From Vitrella brassicaformis CCMP3155 (lineage: Eukaryota; Protista; Chromerida), in the NCBI GenBank assembly GCA_001179505.1, contig CDMY01000309.1, positions 1 to 64,000 of the forward strand: DNA of 64,000 nt, written 5' to 3'. The position numbers and the translations under genes are program-made. This document shows positions 2,378 through 37,300 of the stretch, one piece after another. How positions within the stretch are numbered: the stretch's first letter is position 1; each line of letters starts with the position of its first letter. The notes below the pieces were generated by a model. That model saw only the letters and a program-made list of their open reading frames with translations. It ran no database searches and was not told where the DNA came from.

Positions 2378-4581
2378 TCAGGTGTCCAGGGGTTTCAGGA
2401 TGAGCATGTTCTCCTGATATCCACCCCAGCTAATGTCATGCCGCTTCTCCAGCCCCTCGATGGCGTCGCCATTGGTCCGCTCCTCCACCAGCCGCTTGAA
2501 GGCCTCGTTGGGGATCGGCTGGAACCGAAGCTCCTTGATGCCTCGGATCTTGAGCAGCGACCTGACGCACGCAATGCCGAACTCACCGGCGGCATCGCCA
2601 TCGCCCAAATCCTCAGGCACTGCACACACAGGGAAGGACACAAACCATGGGATGGAATGGATGGATGGATGGGAGTCAGACACCTTTCTTTCACTCATGC
2701 ATGGCTGACCTTCTACGAACATCTCCAGTACTGAGATGGTCGGCAGCTTGTCGGCCATGTCCCCCCACGTCACGCCCCCCTCCCCCAGACCCATCACACA
2801 GCCGCTATCGAAGCGCTCTAAGTGTCTGCCCCGACCCAGCGCCTGCAGCATGCCCACGGCTTGCTCTTCAGTCGGGTCGGTCACAGAGAGGTCAATCTCT
2901 TTGACCGCGGGCATCTTGTGCACCATCTTGCGCCCCATCACCTTGGCCTCCCTGCTGTTGACGATAAGGCGACGTGCGGCGGGGAATGCGTTGTGGGGCA
3001 GGTGGTTGAGCACAACCGGGTCCGGCTGCACTTCCTCCTCGGCATACACCACATCGTCGTCCTCGGTGATCACCACATCGAGCACCTTGGTGAAGGTCAG
3101 GGAGTGTGCGAGGGCGATGGCAGCGGGGCTGGGCGTGTCGAGGGGCCCGGGGTTGGTGAGGTGGTGGGGGCGGACGGTGAAGAAGGCACTGAGCGATGCG
3201 GCCGCCATCTGCTGTATGTGCCTCTGGATGAAGGGGGAGGGCTCCGGGCGCGTGGGCACGTCGCAGAGGAGGCCGAGGTCGAAGTACTCGGTCTCGTGCA
3301 AGTGCTCCTCGGAGAGGAGGATGCTGATGTCGACGGGGATGTCGGGCTTCACACACACGGTGCGTGTGAAGGTCTCGATCGCCGACAGGGTGGGGAAGAT
3401 GCGCCTGTCGATGGGCTCCATCTCGAACTTGGCCTTGAAGCGCTTGATGGACCGGCAGCCACGGTCGACAAGGACGGTCTGCAGAAAGACACAGCCACAA
3501 GTGAGTGAGTGATGAGCAGTGCGAAGATTCTGTCTTTCTGTGCGGCGTGGACACACCTGGAGGCGGCCTAGTCCCTCACGCCACCCATCGAAGCCAATAT
3601 CAGCACCCATCGTCACAAAGGTGAGCGTCCCGACATCCTCCAGCTGGGACAGCGGTCCCGGCTGGCGCGCCTCTGCCGCCGGGAGGCGCCTCAGCGTGTT
3701 GGCCATGCTGTCGGGATTGGAATGCACCTGCAGCTCCTTGAGGCGTCGGGACGCCCCCACCATGTCCCCCAGCTCCCCACCTAGCGCCGTCCACTCTGTC
3801 TGGACCCTCTCGAGTGCTGGGAGACGCCACTTCCGCCGGCGGCCGGGGAACGCTGGCTGTCTAGGTCCACGAATCGAATCCTCATCTCCGGGGATGCCCG
3901 TGATGGATGTGAGGGATGTGAGGGTGGGGGGNNNNNNNNNNNNNNNNNNNNNNNNNNNNNNNNNNNNNNNNNNNNNNNNNNNNNNNNNNNNNNNNNNNNN
4001 NNNNNNNNNNNNNNNNNNNNNNNNNNNNNNNNNNNNNNNNNNNNNNNNNNNNNNNNNNNNNNNNNNNNNNNNNNNNNNNNNNNNNNNNNNNNNNNNNNNN
4101 NNNNNNNNNNNNNNNNNNNNNNNNNNNNNNNNNNNNNNNNNNNNNNNNNNNNNNNNNNNNNNNNNNNNNNNNNNNNNNNNNNNNNNNNNNNNNNNNNNNN
4201 NNNNNNNNNNNNNNNNNNNNNNNNNNNNNNNGTGGCGCCACAGCCGCTGGGGCAGCGCCGCCACCAAATGAAGCGACACGAACGAAAAGACGTAGGCAAC
4301 GACGACAGGCTGAGTGGACAACACACACCACACAGACACAGAGAGAGCAGACAATGAGGATGTGTGTGTTTGCCAGTGTTTTCGTTCGGTACATCTTACG
4401 ATTTGGCTGAAGCGCTGTGCGAAGGCCTCCAGATCTATGCTATGCGGCACGTGCGATGCCGGCTGCTGTTGGTGCTGCTGGCCGTCCGTCATGGCCTCCT
4501 CACCACTGGTCTCCTCCCAATTGTCTCCTCCTCTCCACCGACCCGCCTCTGCCGCTTCGCCACCGCCTCCGAATCGCTCAT
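2378..4581 (-). CDS. Lineage-expanded F-box/LRR-like family, copy 1 (interrupted by N gap 3932-4231)
   Basis: Begins MSDSEAVAKRQRR, carries the conserved PVVVAYVFSFVSLHLVAALPQRLWRH block and repeated LxxLxxLxV segments, and ends ENMLILKPLDT* at 2378. Confidence 0.8.
3932..4231. other. Assembly gap (300 N); the others are at 7583-7882, 18287-18586, 22977-23276, 23911-24210 and 51509-51808
   Basis: All six gaps are exactly 300 N, so they are placeholder lengths. Most abut poly-G/C tracts or repeats. Confidence 0.98.
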
Positions 4582-28377: not shown

Positions 28378-29423
28378 TCACAGGAACCACAGCGACTTGG
28401 ACAGGGCCTCCGAGGGGGCCTTGTTGTCCAGAATCTCCGACACCTTGCGAGCACACCTGACACACACACACACACAATGAGCCATCCATCCCTCTCTCTC
28501 TCTCTCCGCCTACACTTCAGCATATTTGACGACGGATGGGACACGGATGGGCCCTCCCCAGTTCTGGTACAACATGGAGAGCTGCATCGTCATGGTGTAG
28601 AGGCTGTCGGTCGAGAAACCTGCCGGAAGGAAGCAAACCAAAGCAAAGCAGCCCAGCCACACATTCACGTCACGCACTTGGCTGGTTCGTGTAGCACGTG
28701 GGGTGCTGTGCGTGTCCGGGCCGGGCTGGGCTTACTCCAGTTGTCGCTGAGTGCCATGACCTCATACTTGGTCGGCGTCACAGTGCCTGCACATTGGTAA
28801 GCAACACAACACAACACAACAAAGCCACGGACGGTCTGCCGGTCGGCACGCCCCTCTCTCTCTCTCTCTCTCTGTCTGTCCGTGTGTGTTTGTGTGGTGA
28901 GGTGCCCTGCGTGACGGCCTGGTGGCAGCAGAAGAATACGAAGCGGTCGTCCTCAGTCACACCTGACAACACACACACACACATGACATGACATGCAACA
29001 AGTGTCTGTCGCTGACCTTGGTCGAACAGAGTGAGCGGCGGCGGGTTGCCGAGGCCGCCGCCCCCGTCCCGGCCGCCCCCACGCCCGCCAGGGCCGCCAC
29101 CACGGCCGCCACGACCGGGGGGCCCGCCGCCGCCACGACCTCCTCCTCCACCAGATATGGCAAAACTGACACACACACGACACGGATACACACAGACGAG
29201 TAGGTGCGTTCAAGGCCGGGGCTTGGGTTTGGTCTGTTGTGGATTGGATTGTGCCGACATACCGCTGGTTGATGTTTTTTTTGACTGTGATGTAGGCGAC
29301 TTCGGGGCTGAGGTCAGCACTGACCTGCTTGAGCCCTCGTAGATGCTCGGCACCTCGGCCTCGAGCGCCGCGGCCTTCTGGCCGTCACCCAGACCACAAC
29401 TGATCGGTGCACACACACAGATA

Positions 29424-29458
<35 letters not shown>

Positions 29459-31265
29459 GGCGTCCAATCAGCCACACGGAGCGAGAGAGAGAGAGAGATG
29501 TACCGGTAGATGATGATACGCGTCGGGGGTCGTCCGAGGTTCTGCGCGAAGGCGAATGCAGCGTCTGCACCAGGGTCAGGCAGGCAGGCCCCCCCCCGAC
29601 ACACCCACACACACACCATGCCATGCAGCCACACACGGCCTTTGTAGGTGTGGTAGGTACCTTTGATAAATGTGCCGATTCCAGTGATGATCTCGGTCTC
29701 GATGCCGTCCTTGATGTTGGTGCGCGTGTAGTGCTCGAGAAACAGCCGGTCCTGCGTCGCCGCGCACACGAACACCGTCTTGCCTGACACACACACACAC
29801 ACACACACATGACCATGGCCATGTGTGTGTGTGTGTGTGTGCGGTAGCTATACCCTTGGCCTTCTTGGCATCGACACCGACAACCATCACAGGCTACACG
29901 CACACACACAAAGGCAGGCCCCCACCCCAGCAATGGCTCGACAGGTGAATGGTGTGTGTCAGCCGCCCGCCCGACCTTGTCATGCAGACGCTTGACATTC
30001 AGAGCCCACGCAGCGCCACCCATCTGCACACACACACACATGGATGGATGGATGGATGGATGGCGCAAGGGCAAGGGCGTGTGTGTGCCTTGTGTGTGTG
30101 GCCGCCCACCTTGACGTTCATCTGTGCGATGAGTTTGACTACGGCCGAGCCCCACTTGCGCTCATCGTTGATCGTCTTGGACTGCACAAACTGCACACAC
30201 ACCACAGCCACCACAGCATTCAAAGCAACAACAAATATGTGTGTGTCATGTGTGTGCCTGTCTGTCTCTGTGTGTGCCCGAGAAGTGTGTGTATGTGTGT
30301 GTGTGTGTGTGTGTGGCGAGGTATCCCAACCTGAGAAGCTACGGGGGTGAGGTCGTTGCTGTGGACGGAGAGCCGCTCCTTCATCTTGCTGTACACCCTG
30401 GACGCCACGTCAGGCTTGCTGCGTCACACACACGCACTCCCTCACTCTCTCTCTCTCTCTCTGTGTGTGTGTCTCCCCCCCCTCTCTCTACGTCTGTCTG
30501 TGTGAGGGAGTGGTGGGTGGTTGTTTGTTTACCCTGGTAGGATGACACAGACGATGACACTGTTGCCGTTCTCTTTCGCACCACGCTGCTGCTGCTCGAT
30601 CATGCCGTTGAGGTACTTCCAGAAGCCGCCCTCCTCCAGAGCGCCACGCCAGCCGCCCTTGTCCTTGGGGATACCTGATGCCATGCACACATAAGATAGA
30701 TAGGTGGCGTCCGTCGTCGTCTCTCTGTGTCTGGTCGTTCGTTGCGTGTGCGTGTCGTGGTGCGGTGTGGGTGGGGTGGGTGTAGGTACCGAGATATGCA
30801 GGCTCAGCGATGGGCATGCCGAACTCTGGGCAAGGCAGGGAAGGGCACAGACACACGACGTACACACATCATGATGTCGATCCATCCATTTGGGCGGTGT
30901 GTTTGTGTGTGTGTGTGTGTGTGTGTACTTTGGCAGGTGCTTCGGAGGCTGTCGAGGAGTTTGTAGGAGTCCTGCCCGCTCGTCGCCTCGTCATACACCA
31001 TGATCCAGTTCGTCAGCCCAACCTACACACACACATAAACACCAAGTGGGTGTGTGTATGTGTGTTTTCCCTCCCAGGTGCACCGGACCGGTTTGACGAG
31101 CGAGTCGACGTTGAAGTTGGCGTTGTCTGGCTTGAGTGTCTTGCCGCGCAGGTTGGGGTCGCTCTTGGTCGGCCTCTCCTTCCCCAGGGGCTCGAACTCA
31201 TTGGGACGGGTGTAGAAGTTGAAGTTCGTCGCACCGTCCCCAATGGCCAACTGACGGCCTAAACA

Positions 31266-31299
<34 letters not shown>

Positions 31300-34040
31300 A
31301 ACGAGAGAGGGAGGGTGGGAGGGGGACAAACAGTGTGGCTGTGCTCTGTGTGTGGGTCGTCGGCTTACCGCTGACTACTTTGCGGTCGTTGCTGATACTG
31401 ATGCCGTACTTGGCCAACACCTCTGCACACACACACACACCGACAGAGCCACACACACCGACAGAGCCACACACACACCACACAGCATAGCACAGCACAG
31501 ATGAATGGATGGAGGCACCGCAGCATCCCCCACCCTCCCAGCCACCCACCTTTTGCGTCTCTGTTGTTCTGCAGTATGTGTGCCAGTTGCTGGCTCTTGT
31601 CGAGGCGCTCGCCGGGCAGCATGCGGCAGTGGCGGCCCACCTCGTTGTTCAGGCGGAAGTCGCTGCGGATCGACTCGTCCAAACCTGCACACAACACAAG
31701 GTGTGCAGGGGTGCATTGAAGGGGTGAGTGAGTGATGTGATGTCATGTGGTGATGCGGTATCATGCTGGTTGGTGCCGGTGGCGGGCTCCACTCTACCTG
31801 TGAGCGTGACGGCCTGTGAGGGGAGATGGAAGGTGCGGATGACCTGCCACTCGCCGTCGATTTTCTTCTTCTTGCTCGACACCACTGCACACACACATCC
31901 ACACACTCTCTCCCTCCCTCCCTCCATCCCTCCCTCCCTGTGTCTGCACGTGTGTGTGGTGCGATGTGTTGGTGGCTGGCTGGTCGCCCGCCTGCCTGCC
32001 CACCCATTGGCTGGCCCGGTGTGAGTTGGATGCCGTAGGTCTGCGAGAAGTAGTCGCCTATCGTCCAGGTCTTGCCGCTGCGGTCGGTGAAGGTGCTCTT
32101 GGGCGACATGTCGTAGTCAATCTATAGCACATAGGTACCATGCACACCCACACGCAGCCACCATACCATACACTCCTCTGGATGAATGGATGGGTGGGTG
32201 TTGGGGTAAGTAAGCAACCTTGTCGATGGCGTACAGCTTGCGCTCGCGGTTGTTAGCGGGACCGCTCGACTGCACAAACAGACAGACCAACACACACAAT
32301 CGCACGGGGTGCGGCGTGGCGTGTGTGTGGTGTGTACGTCCCCCCTACGTAGAGGGTGATGATGCGACGGCCGACAAACTCTTTGTTGATGTAGTCGCTG
32401 AGCCCCGATTTGGGGCCCTGCCAGCTGGACTGCACAGCAGGAAAAACAGGGAGGGCGAGAGGGAGAGAGGGAGGGAGGGAGGGAGGGAGCCAAATCGACA
32501 GTGGCTGTGGTTGTGGTTGCCAGTACGTGTGTGGGCATGTGGGGTGCGTGGGGTCACCGCTTTCTTCTTCAACGTTTCGAAGAGGTTCTCACTATGTAGA
32601 ATGCGATGCGTGCAGTCAATCTGCACACACACACACACACACACACGCACAGAGAGAGAGAGAGAGAGAGAGTTAGCATGACACCAGCCCAGCCCCACCC
32701 GACCCACCCCACCGCCCCAAGGGTACGTGCCTGGAAGTAGAGTTGGCCGCCGAGCTGGAGCATGCTTGTGAAGTAGCCCGGCAGCAACTGCACACACCAA
32801 CACACACACACGTTCGTTGGTCAAGTTGGCTGGTGGACTGTGGTGTGATGCCGAATTGGATGTATGTGTGTGGACCTGGAAGCGGTTGACGTTGATGACG
32901 GCGCCGCGGTGCTCAGAGTTCTGCTCCAACATCTCCGTGAGGAACGAGTGGCGCCCGATGGACTGGAGCTGCACACCACCACACACACATGAGGATGACA
33001 TTGGGTGCGTGAGGGTGGGCTGGGCTGGTTTGGGTGTGGCTACCTACGTGAAGGTGTCCCATGGCCTTTTTGATGGCGCAGCTGATGTACTGAACGTCCT
33101 CCTGGTCCAACTCGCCGCGCATCACCTTGTCCTGAGCTGCACACACCACACCACACCACACCACATCACAACACACCACAACACAGCACAGAACAGAAGA
33201 GGTAGTGGGTCCATGTCCGTGTTGCCCGCGTCATGTGTGTGGGTGTGGGGGTGTGTGGGTGTGCCGCCGCTCACTGAGGTCGAGGCGGTGTTTGCGCAGG
33301 AACACGATCTTCTGCCCCTGGGCGTCACCCTGCACCCACACACACCACAACACAATACAGCACACACAACACACAGTCCCACCAATCTGTGTGGCATGGT
33401 GCGGTGCAGTGCAGCGCAGCGCGGTACCGTGAGGCTGTCCACGGTCACACTGGCCGATGGTTTCGACGGATTCACTACGAACGTGTTCATGCCCTGCATA
33501 CAACACATCACCCCACACCACACCACACCACATCACACCACACCACACACAAGGGGCTCGTGCGGTGCGCATGCACGTGTGGTGGTGTTCACCTGGTAGA
33601 GTACCGCACTGCCCGCAGCGCCACCCAACGCCTCCAGTATCTGCCACCACGTGCGCACACCGCCAGCGACACAACCGATGCAAATCCGCCCCATCCCCCA
33701 TCCGCCAGCCATCCTGCCTTCGCATGCGCCCTCTCCCCGCCTCCCCGCACCTCCCTCACACCCTGACCTGGCTCCCACCCTCTCTCTCTCCCGCCCTGCG
33801 CGCGCCTAACTCCCGGTGTGTGGGCATCTGGCCTCACCTGCTGCTCGTTGTGATAGATGAGCTTGCGCTGGCCGCCCACATTCTCGACGTCGGGGTCGAA
33901 CTGCGTGGAATAGACCTGGACGGTGAGGCCTGGGGCAAGCCCGCACGGGAGAAGGTTCGTCTGGGCGGAAACCTCTGCGCCGAGGCTGGCGAAGGCGCCG
34001 TTCGGGCGACGCACCGCAGGCTCTGACCGCTCATCGCTGC
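28378..34040 (-). CDS. AGO: Argonaute-family protein, Piwi-like (N, PAZ, MID, PIWI), about 28-30 exons; start codon unresolved
   Basis: SLGAEVSAQTNL (N motif), TIGDYFSQTYGIQLTPGQPM (PAZ), VYSKMK...SQV...AQMNVKVGG (MID), VVGVDA, IIIYRCGLGDGQ, NPPPLTLFDQ, HQAVTQGTVTPTKY, YQNWGGPIRVPSVVKYA and LSKSLWFL*. Confidence 0.92.
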
Positions 34041-34327
34041 CTGCCGCCACAAACGACAAAAACGCCAAAGGACGATCTGCGAGCTGCGGGCTTGGAGCTG
34101 CAATGGGGCTTGTAAATAGACCTCCTACCAACCATTCAGAAGCGTCGGTGATGCATCTTGCGTCACATATATGGGACAGACGAACAGGCACTCTGAGTGC
34201 CTGCAGAGACTCACTCACTCGTGGTATTTATGTAAGCCGCAGCCAGCAAAGGTACCGGACTCCTATGTACACACCGCCACGCCCATCTATCTAATATCCC
34301 CTCTAGACAGACACCGGGCCGCATCAC

Positions 34328-37300
34328 TCACGCCACCATCTGTCTGCCCCACGGCCCCCCCTCTCCCCCGCTCTCGATAGACATCCTGTCGCTGAACCGA
34401 CCGACACTGCCTCGCATCACGGTGCCCTGGGCATCCGACGAAGGACCCTCCTCTCCCTGCCGCTCTGGCGACGGCTCCCTCTCCCCTGCGCCCTTGTCGC
34501 TGTCGATCTGGAGGGCCCATCCGTGGTGCAGGGGGGTGTCTGGTGGGAGGGTTGGCAGCGTCACCTCGAGCAGGTTGATGGGTGTCCCGTCGCGAGAGAA
34601 GGACGACAGCCGGTGGGTCACGCTGCCCGAGTGACCCAGGAGGCTCACGCTTGACACATCCATGCCAACCTGACGCGACACAGACACAGACAGACAGACA
34701 CGGACATACACGACACGTGTTCCCATATCGCTCTTTGTCGCTCACGCACTTGTGGGGGTGCCTGCAATCGCAGCACTGGCGGCACATCAGTGGGCCATGC
34801 GAAGAAGATGGCATAGATGCGCGTCGGGAGGTCGCTCTTGGGCACCTGCGGAGGGGCCATGGGGGACGGCGGGCTGCTGCTGCTGGGGGTGGGTGTGGGG
34901 GGGCTGGACTGCTGCTGCTGCTGCGGCAGCGGCGGCTGCTGATGGGGTAGTGGGCATTTCGTGCGTGATGTGTAGAAGACGTCTGTCGTGAAGTTGTCCG
35001 TCTGGATCAGCCAGGGGTAGGTGCCGTAGATGGCCTCGCCGTTGAGACTCTGCACACACGCAAGAGGGAGGCACATCGACGTGCCCGCGCCTGTCTGTCT
35101 GTCTGTGTGGGTGTGCGCGTATGTTGTGTGGCTCACTCACGAGCCAGTGTCCCATCTCGAGCAGCCGTTGCTGAAAGTAGAAGTCGATTCGGCCGTCGGC
35201 TGTTGGGCCGATGTTGAGCAGCAGGTTGCCGCCATACGCCACGGTCGACGCCAGCTTGTAGATCAACTCTGGTCGGTCGACAGATACACAACAAACAGAC
35301 ATGCAGTGGGAGGGAGGGGATTGGGTGATGATGCAGAGTGCGCCAGGTTCCATCCACCGAACCACATGCACTAATGTGTGTCGACACACCCTGTCTGTTG
35401 ACTTGCCTTTAGTAGTGAGGAGGTCTTCCATTTTCGCTTCTCGTCTGTACCCCCAGCTGTTCTTGTCGAGCGTCATCGCATTCTCCCCTGCAGCGCAGCA
35501 GAGACCAATCCACCCACCCCACACATCCCTCCAGTGATGGGATGGCTGTGTCACGTCACGTGCCAGCCAGTGTCACTCACGTACATTTGTGGTCGATGAC
35601 GTGTCCGGGGTGGAACTTGTCGCTGCCCGTGTAGAAGCCGCCATGCCGATTGGTGGTGTCCGACGACCACCTGACCATGTCAGCACACAACACACACACA
35701 GATGGATGGATGGATGGATGGATGTGGAGTGAGGCGTGAATCGCCGGTTTGTTTGGTGGATGTGGTTCTTCATTCACCTGTCATTGATGACGACCTCTTC
35801 CCGGACGGGCGACTCATTGTACAGCCACGCCACGAACTCACAGTTGCCCCAATACTCCTCAGGCGCCTCCCACTGACCGTCGCCCCACACTATGTGCGGC
35901 CTGAACAAACCAACCAACCAACCAACCACCACACTCAACTGCACAGGTACTGCCCCCGCGCGTCGGCATGTGCAGACGCACCTACCTGTATCTCTTGACC
36001 AGGTCATAGAGCTGTGGGTGACTGACGTCCCGTGGGTAGTCGCGTGTGGCCTTGAAGGCCCCTGCCTTGTCGCCCATGTAGAGGGGATTGAACCACTCGA
36101 GATGCGAGAAGTACAGACCGAAACGAAGACTCGTTCTGAGGGCACACAACACAGCGCACATCGACGCCATGGATGGATGCCCTGCTGGTATTGTGGTGGT
36201 GTGTGCGTGTGTGTGTGTGTGTACCTATTGCGCACTGCGTTCATCAGGTCTTTGACGAGATCCCGATGCGGCCCGACGTCGACCGAGTTCCAGTTCCACG
36301 ACTGAGCTGAGGGCCACAGCGTATAGCCTGGAGGAAAACCATCGCTCGTTATAGCTGCGTGTGTCTGTCTGTCTGTCTGTGTTGTGTGTCTCTATTCATT
36401 CACCTTCGTGGTGTTTGCTGGTCAGCACGACATACCTCGCCCCGCTCTTGGCCAAAAGGTCCGCCCAGCCATTGGCATCGAAGAACTCGGCACGGAACTG
36501 AGGCGCAAACTCGGCGTAGGTAAACCCTGCACACACAGAGAGAAAGGCATGATCAATGGGGGAACGGGTAAGGGAGTGATATGTGTGTGCTGCTCGGTCG
36601 GTCGGACCTGGCGGATAGTTCTTGGCCATGAAGTCTTTGACGGCCTCGTTGTTCTCGACCTTCCATCTGTGCCAGAACCACTCGGAGACGAATGCTGGCA
36701 CGCTGAAGACACCCTGCATATGTGATTGATGCAGACATCGATTGACACACGAGTCGCTGCTGCGTCCGTATCGTATGTGCAGATAGATCAGATTCTCGTT
36801 CACTCACTCCCCCACCCAGTGGATGAAGATGCCAAACTAGACCCACGCAGGCAGATAGAAACAGAAACAGGGCAGCACGGTCTGACTGAACCTTCGACAC
36901 TTCTTGCTCTGCTCTGCTTGCTCACCTTAGCTTCATCATACCTGCACAAACACACACACACACACACAAAGCACCAACAGTCAATCTGTCCCTGTGGCTG
37001 GCTGCCTGTCTGTCTGTCTGTCCGTCAGCTGTGCAGCGTTGTGGTGTGTTGTGTAGTGCTGACTGACTGACCACTGTGGGGGAGGTCGTTTGTCGAGGCT
37101 TTCCCAGCTTGGCTGGTAGCTGTAAGTCAGGTTCATGCTGGCGCTCGGGCTCATCCGCGACTCCATTTCGGCATCGTCACCGCCCGTCACGCCGCCTGGG
37201 GGATTGGCAGCCGTCGGGCCATGACCACTGGCGGCATTGCTGATAGATGGACAGCATGGGACGGACAGCAAAGTCACAGACAGAGAAAGCAATGACACAA

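Follow-up and report, generated by a model that had tools for sequence, protein, structure and literature searches.

The stretch of DNA analysed here (the window, all 64,000 nucleotides (nt) of it, positions 1 to 64,000 of contig CDMY01000309.1 in GenBank assembly GCA_001179505.1) comes from Vitrella brassicaformis CCMP3155 and carries, on its minus strand, a Piwi-type Argonaute gene with PAZ, MID and PIWI domains and a degenerate slicer site. An earlier, sequence-only reading of this DNA had placed the gene in a photosynthetic relative of the apicomplexans, which is what Vitrella is. We consider it very probable that the gene belongs to a Vitrella-specific, slicer-broken PIWI subfamily and that the window copy combines the tetrad D-E-C-E with an RGG expansion and a one-base break of its reading frame. 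On this explanation, both the second Asp and the His of the slicer site would have been replaced before the PIWI-clade subfamily diversified. Since PAZ, the 5′-phosphate pocket of MID and the PIWI-type C-terminus are all kept, its proteins most likely load small guide RNAs and bind targets without cutting them; the Asp sites appear to be unconstrained, so that no endonucleolytic cleavage would be expected, and silencing would come from partners that these proteins recruit. Besides D-E-C-E, the window copy would have acquired an RGG-rich enlargement of one loop in its PIWI domain, and the frame break, between codons 722 and 724, would end its protein early, so that the C-terminal third of that domain is missing.

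Slicer-competent Argonautes carry a DEDH or DEDD tetrad; in the window protein the first Asp (D630) and a Glu finger are present, and the second Asp and the final His/Asp are not, their places being taken by Cys698 and Glu857. The sequence-only reading had reported this D-E-C-E tetrad, and every residue it named lies at the position it gave (Table 1). E666, the Glu-finger candidate, aligns with the catalytic Glu column of PIWI proteins in multiple alignments; a search of the PDB with exon 24 (the Glu finger) alone returned no solved structure, which leaves the E666 assignment to multiple alignment only.

Both Cys698 and Glu857 adjoin splice junctions, and for this reason all nearby donors and acceptors were enumerated (every GT, GC, GA or AT donor with every AG or AC acceptor). 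At neither junction did any in-frame option give an Asp after YR or a His or Asp after YA, so that the escape which the sequence-only reading had allowed for, other splice sites restoring YRDG or YAH, was not found among the sites in the sequence. Only 29504/29399 (at Cys698, a GT-AG intron of 104 nt) and 28514/28456 (at Glu857, GT-AG, 57 nt) retain conserved flanks with normal introns. The paralogues match the sequence at both junctions, reading YR[C/S/T/G]GLG and K[Y/M]AE[V/T]CARKV, and in a gap-free alignment of one paralogue exon with human PIWIL1 and AGO3 the variable residue falls on the Asp of YRDG.

These replacements are not peculiar to the window. Genome scans with the Pfam Piwi profile, a YRxG-exon profile and the paralogue P0003 (CEM33522.1) found at least nine loci of the subfamily, the window included. 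Among the eight others, the His site holds Glu in all eight and the second-Asp site, readable in seven, holds Cys, Ser, Thr or Gly, while the first-Asp site varies among D, A and E across the subfamily. With Glu fixed at the His site and the Asp sites drifting, the loss of slicing would predate the spread of the subfamily, and the pattern looks like that of an old loss followed by continued use of the protein. Of the members, three have complete deposited proteins and two are represented by partial models; CEM33522.1 (A0A0G4GSD9), CEM11784.1 and CEL95475.1 are each deposited as “Piwi domain-containing protein” of V. brassicaformis CCMP3155. The single effector pictured by the sequence-only reading is thus one of at least nine loci, several of them already deposited as proteins. 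We infer that the subfamily as a whole lacks slicing, and the earlier suggestion of a non-slicing protein is fair in that the Asp sites of the paralogues drift; the window copy, for its part, may yield no full protein (see below).

A profile search of 1.84 billion representatives returned only Vitrella sequences above 75 bits, the next matches being ordinary Piwi proteins and environmental fragments, and among 247 fetched proteins only those of Vitrella had Glu at the His site. Our literature searches found no paper describing the Vitrella Piwi family, none naming Chromera together with Piwi, and no small-RNA, localisation or activity data for Vitrella Argonautes; the papers that name Vitrella together with Argonaute concern unrelated matters, and the Vitrella genome paper makes no mention of Argonaute, Piwi, RNA interference or Dicer (PMC4501334).

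The domains were assigned from Pfam and PDB searches made on single exons of the window gene, with multiple alignment where these searches were silent. One exon holds the PAZ core at a score above the Pfam cut-off (Table 1). The Piwi family PF02171 matched single exons at 25.5 (the C-terminal exon), 16.4 and 26.8 bits, values from short exons that each lie below the whole-protein cut-off; the C-terminal exon was also flagged when PF02171 was scanned over the whole genome. In the multiple alignment, Y559, K563, Q579, Q602, N604 and K606 occupy the columns of the 5′-phosphate pocket and are identical to the residues of animal PIWIL1 orthologues, and the MID assignment is taken from that alignment, a PDB search with exon 21 (MID) alone having given no useful match. 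The intact guide pocket of the sequence-only reading therefore stands, with all six residues in pocket columns and the C-terminal Leu in place; pocket and free C-terminal carboxylate are present together, provided that the frame break is not real.

From its similarity scores and tree placement, the window protein is a PIWI-clade and not an AGO-clade Argonaute, in agreement with the sequence-only reading. When its C-terminal exon was searched against the PDB, all matches were PIWI-clade structures except for one Asgard Ago (E = 1.1). The window protein is 43% identical to P0003, its closest annotated paralogue, by BLASTP over residues 19-867 of our first model, and P0003 in turn scores 138-185 bits on PIWI chains of solved structures and 55-73 bits on AGO chains. 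A word search with the MID-PIWI part of P0003 returned only Vitrella paralogues and Piwi-like proteins of animals and amoebae, and one with its first 500 residues returned only two paralogues. In a maximum-likelihood tree (32 rows, 764 columns, LG+C20+F+G4, from a sequence set without named ciliate proteins), the window protein and four other Vitrella proteins form one clade (Shimodaira-Hasegawa-like approximate likelihood ratio test, SH-aLRT, 100). This clade falls with the PIWI proteins where AGO and PIWI separate (SH-aLRT 100), at the end of a long stem branch of 1.4 substitutions per site.

The window copy probably has a broken frame, being either a recently dead gene or one that was mis-assembled. 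Of its 31 introns 30 are normal, and the remaining junction, between exons 26 and 27, can be made only through a 17-nt “intron” (29324-29308) or with one added base, which might lie in the CCCC run at 29307-29304. The shortest of the other introns of the gene has 54 nt, and the shortest of 102 solved introns mapped from five annotated paralogue proteins (98 GT-AG and 4 GC-AG, 61-452 nt) has 61 nt. If the sequence is read through with one base added, the conserved Pro of a P-E-x motif stands at +31 from the YRxG site, as it does in human PIWIL1, AGO3 and the paralogues C537 and C227:577k (+32 in P0003); if the 17 nt are spliced out, it stands at +25 and six residues are lost. The “skipped” stretch, read in the upstream frame, still resembles paralogue coding sequence, and among alternative introns of normal size across the break none bridges it without deleting conserved residues. 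The 17-nt gap is thus most likely not an intron, and its outlying length, taken with the +31 spacing that one base restores, makes a broken frame probable.

As assembled, the RGG exon would be translated in the wrong frame and a stop would follow in the next exon; with this early stop the last third of the PIWI domain would be lost, and with it Glu857 and the C-terminal carboxylate that completes the pocket. No product of the window locus of 478 residues or more was found in the protein collection (150 profile hits plus word searches, of which the word searches could have missed products below 478 residues), though paralogues were found there. The full effector that the sequence-only reading saw in this copy is accordingly in doubt: its frame very likely breaks within the PIWI domain, and it may make no full protein.

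Shortly downstream of the break, a surface loop of the PIWI domain carries a Gly/Arg-rich insert of about 28 residues, where the loop is Gly-rich and only about seven residues long in animal PIWI proteins and most paralogues. The insert contains a 21-nt tandem duplication. Such a tract occurs in two of the nine copies, the window and, in longer form, C537 (C537:19800-29700, about 1700-1880), and is absent from C227:577k, the nearest relative of the window copy; from its repeat structure and distribution it appears to be a product of recent repeat slippage and not a long-standing functional module. The N-terminus of the window protein is short and has no RGG.

The gene model was built by joining exons by coordinates in a script and runs from 34135 to 28378 in 32 coding exons, giving a product of 883 residues if the 17-nt gap is skipped (Table 1). 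Its 31 introns comprise 28 of the GT-AG type (54-197 nt), two of the GC-AG type and the one that would be 17 nt. The start codon is most likely the ATG at 34135-34133, which gives an N-terminus of the same length as that of the annotated paralogues. The sequence-only reading had begun the gene at 34040, which is instead the first base of exon 2; the junctions it quoted are sound, and the intron that its model implicitly needs at the 17-nt gap is most likely not one. The 16-codon exon at 33593-33640 was added after alignment with the paralogues had exposed a missing segment, and it cuts a 344-nt intron of the first model into introns of 197 and 99 nt. GC-AG introns with a G/GCAC-like donor recur in the subfamily (2 of 31 introns in the window gene, 4 of 102 in the annotated paralogues); in C537, the two donors matching those of the window are GT. 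GC-AG donors as a sign of decay could be ruled out, given those 4 of 102 in the annotated paralogues. About 190 nt upstream of the Piwi start ends an open frame (34328-34726, minus strand) that resembles the final exon of an adjacent gene in the same orientation.

TABLE 1. Features of the window Piwi-type Argonaute gene, and residues at the first-Asp/second-Asp/His sites of the subfamily loci.
Feature	Position	Strand	Remark
Coding span of Piwi-type Argonaute gene	28378..34135	-	ATG 34135-34133 to TGA 28380-28378
Exons 1-8	34129-34135; 33838-34040; 33593-33640; 33428-33493; 33275-33329; 33048-33136; 32876-32968; 32731-32787	-	
Exons 9-16	32558-32620; 32349-32429; 32219-32269; 32004-32121; 31798-31884; 31550-31684; 31369-31422; 31089-31258	-	
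Exons 17-24	30929-31022; 30790-30825; 30533-30674; 30331-30418; 30110-30190; 29976-30023; 29854-29893; 29661-29783	-	
Exons 25-32	29504-29564; 29325-29399; 29263-29307; 29017-29165; 28906-28962; 28736-28786; 28514-28619; 28378-28456	-	
Proposed first coding exon (7 nt, ATG GTT G)	34129..34135	-	Followed by an 88-nt GT-AG intron
16-codon exon	33593..33640	-	AG and GT flanks; aligns with a segment of paralogues P0003, P0171 and P0151
GC donor, GC-AG intron	32729..32730	-	
PAZ core exon	32004..32121	-	PF02170, E = 4e-07, 30.4 bits, cut-off 28.8
MID exons 20 and 21	30110..30418	-	140-nt intron between them; carry Y559, K563, Q579, Q602, N604, K606
First catalytic Asp, D630 (GAT, VVGVDA)	29870..29872	-	Kept
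Glu-finger candidate, E666 (GAG, IETEII)	29692..29694	-	E664 lies two residues before
Cys698 (TGT) at second Asp site	29396..29398	-	YRCG for YRDG
Probable frame break	29304..29325	-	Frames of exon 26 (ends 29325) and exon 27 (starts 29307) differ by one base
Gly/Arg-rich (RGG) insert, PIWI-domain surface loop	29054..29155	-	Residues 741-774
GC donor, second GC-AG intron	28904..28905	-	
Glu857 (GAA) at catalytic His/Asp site	28516..28518	-	YAE for YAH
Leu883 codon and TGA stop	28378..28383	-	Protein ends LWFL, a PIWI-type tail
Locus C309 (window)			D/C/E; RGG insert, probable frame break
Locus C227:577k			D/C/E; nearest to window in YRCG exon and tail
Locus C537			A/S/E; RGG insert at same loop as window copy
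Locus C786 (CEM33522.1)			E/G/E
Locus C964 (P0171)			E/G/E
Locus C319			D/second-Asp exon unclear/E; Glu inferred from exon match
Loci C227:629k, C413 and C425			D/T/E each

Some of the other copies deserve comment. A peptide of the Marine Microbial Eukaryote Transcriptome Sequencing Project (P0152, 155 residues) matches C227:577k at 100% over its first 85 residues and with gaps over the remainder, so that this locus is transcribed and the captured transcript is unspliced or poorly spliced; the peptide (C227:574000-582000, about 3320-3930) reads through intron-like sequence. In C537 the first catalytic Asp has become Ala (VGVAC), and an assembly gap (a run of N; C537:19800-29700, about 850-1150) falls within the C-terminal exons. 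A more distant Piwi locus, C531 (C531:279800-289700), keeps YRDG, has Ala at the His site (MYAAKL) and stands outside the subfamily. An independent public assembly contains a 3182-nt contig (ENA) whose 151-residue open reading frame, P0002, has a YRTG exon near to, and not identical with, those of the C227, C413 and C425 copies, which points to one more copy or to another Vitrella-like strain among the public data.

What the frame break says about the window copy is closely balanced. About an even chance attaches to the view that it was recently inactivated, a young pseudogene that inherited its degenerate tetrad from functional ancestors and suffered the break as a later, real mutation. The 17-nt outlier, which no intron of normal size replaces, speaks for this, as do the lack of any deposited protein found for the locus and the fresh 21-nt duplication in the RGG insert, which is consistent with relaxed constraint; the assembly, moreover, was Illumina-based, built with velvet and corrected with iCORN (PMC4501334). 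Set against a real lesion, and so against part of our preferred explanation, are several observations: this is a single disruption in 2.65 kb of coding sequence, with no in-frame stops, all splice sites usable (those downstream of the break included) and the C-terminal motifs intact, and within the 17-nt stretch itself GTCAGT would make a good donor, CTGAC resembles a branch site and CAG could serve as the acceptor. A lone lesion amid usable splice sites means that an assembly error fits as well as a young pseudogene does; Illumina reads with error correction argue against an indel error, which is still possible in a multi-copy family. Falling only slightly short of an even prospect is that the copy is intact and functional, a guide-binding, non-slicing Piwi effector of 883-889 residues that contains an ultra-short intron or lacks a base in the assembly. 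All its other exons are open, its motifs are conserved to the last residue, GC-AG introns are normal in the subfamily, and its sister C227:577k shares the D/C/E state and is transcribed. However, 17 nt lies far outside the range of 54-452 nt covered by about 130 introns, splicing would remove six residues from a segment of constant length in the aligned PIWI, AGO and paralogue sequences, the stretch to be skipped is still homologous coding sequence in the upstream frame, and the protein collection yielded no full-length product of the locus. Of the two routes to an intact gene, a local assembly error is quite possible, and true splicing of the 17 nt is unlikely.

Two further alternatives concern the subfamily as well as the window copy. 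It is very improbable that the protein still cleaves RNA, through Cys698 and Glu857 with a softer metal or in a relaxed site. Carboxylates do stand at three of the four sites, and the Glu at the fourth is conserved in all eight paralogues read, but the second-Asp site varies among C, S, T and G and the first among D, A and E, unlike a conserved active site; in RNase H-fold Argonautes, loss of the second Asp abolishes slicing in the cases studied. Against the non-slicing account, which is read from residues, it must be set that, according to a 2023 review, the Argonaute of Toxoplasma (TgAGO), with E/S/E, keeps weak Mg-dependent cleavage (PMC9935688, citing Musiyenko 2012). Rather improbable, too, is that the subfamily is the chromerid counterpart of the coccidian TgAGO, its methylated RGG repeats recruiting Tudor-SN to stand in as the nuclease. 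RNA silencing is mostly gone from apicomplexan parasites, and TgAGO is the one well-studied survivor. In a 2010 description it lacks the catalytic residues, keeps the MID pocket and bears at its N-terminus an RGG domain to which PRMT1 and Tudor-SN bind (PMC2877743); in several coccidia the triad is E/S/E according to the 2023 review, where the name “PIWI-Api” is proposed (PMC9935688). Both have Glu at the His site, and both carry a small polar residue in place of the second Asp; RGG tracts occur in the window copy and C537. On the other hand, published trees place TgAGO, weakly, among AGO-like proteins (PMC2877743) and the Vitrella subfamily is PIWI-clade; no apicomplexan protein appeared in the word-search matches or among 30 named hits (most of the 150 profile hits being unnamed); and the RGG tract of the window is internal, confined to two of nine copies and apparently recent, in a subfamily that has no N-terminal extension such as carries the RGG of TgAGO. 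A broader scenario, in which a chromerid PIWI subfamily lost its slicer early, fixed the Glu and expanded to at least nine members, the apicomplexan “AGO” descending from it with RGG tracts as a handle for an outside nuclease such as Tudor-SN, seems to us unlikely. We therefore retain the slicer-broken Vitrella subfamily, with a probably frame-broken copy in the window, as the explanation.

Non-slicing Argonautes are common: human AGO1 and AGO4 and the WAGO proteins of C. elegans bind guides without a complete DEDH tetrad and recruit partners. The window gene is a further member of this known slicer-inactive kind of PIWI/Argonaute, and by itself it adds little, being probably frame-broken with intact members already public. 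More interesting as a lead is the entire subfamily, with its possible connection to TgAGO; it offers a comparative handle on the origin of non-cutting small-RNA effectors in the apicomplexan/chromerid lineage. Human AGO1/AGO4 and the WAGOs belong to other clades and have other replacements, and we know of none among them with the Cys/Glu pair.

Compared with the PIWI-clade proteins of animals and protists (PIWIL1/MIWI, Siwi, Drosophila Piwi, Ephydatia Piwi-A), which are the best-scoring solved structures and database neighbours of the Vitrella subfamily, the window protein shares the PAZ-MID-PIWI architecture, the 5′-phosphate pocket, the NW.G.IRVP motif and the [F/Y/W][F/Y]L C-terminus. It differs from them in having Cys and Glu for the second Asp and His, in lacking the N-terminal RG/RA extension and in carrying its RGG-rich expansion in an internal PIWI loop; the subfamily, moreover, has a long stem branch, and the searches made turned it up in Vitrella only.

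With TgAGO (compared here by its published description), the Vitrella subfamily shares the apicomplexan/chromerid lineage, the replaced catalytic residues with Glu at the His position, the MID pocket and RGG (PMC2877743, PMC9935688), a suggestive resemblance when the small polar residue at the second-Asp site is added. TgAGO, however, is single-copy, weakly AGO-like in trees and N-terminal in its RGG, whereas the Vitrella subfamily is multi-copy and PIWI-clade, with RGG internal and in only some copies. The sequence-only reading had named, as one thing that would refute it, orthologues in which this tetrad was already described; that applies in kind, a catalytically degenerate apicomplexan Argonaute with E/S/E having already been described (PMC2877743, PMC9935688), and not to the exact set of residues.

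Closest of all are the three deposited Vitrella paralogues (CEM33522.1, CEM11784.1, CEL95475.1), which are 36-43% identical to the window protein by BLASTP and at most 49% identical over the columns kept for the tree. They have the same exon-rich structure, the same Glu at the His site and, like the window gene, a residue other than Asp at the second site, and they differ from it in having Gly or Thr for Cys, no RGG insert and no frame break.

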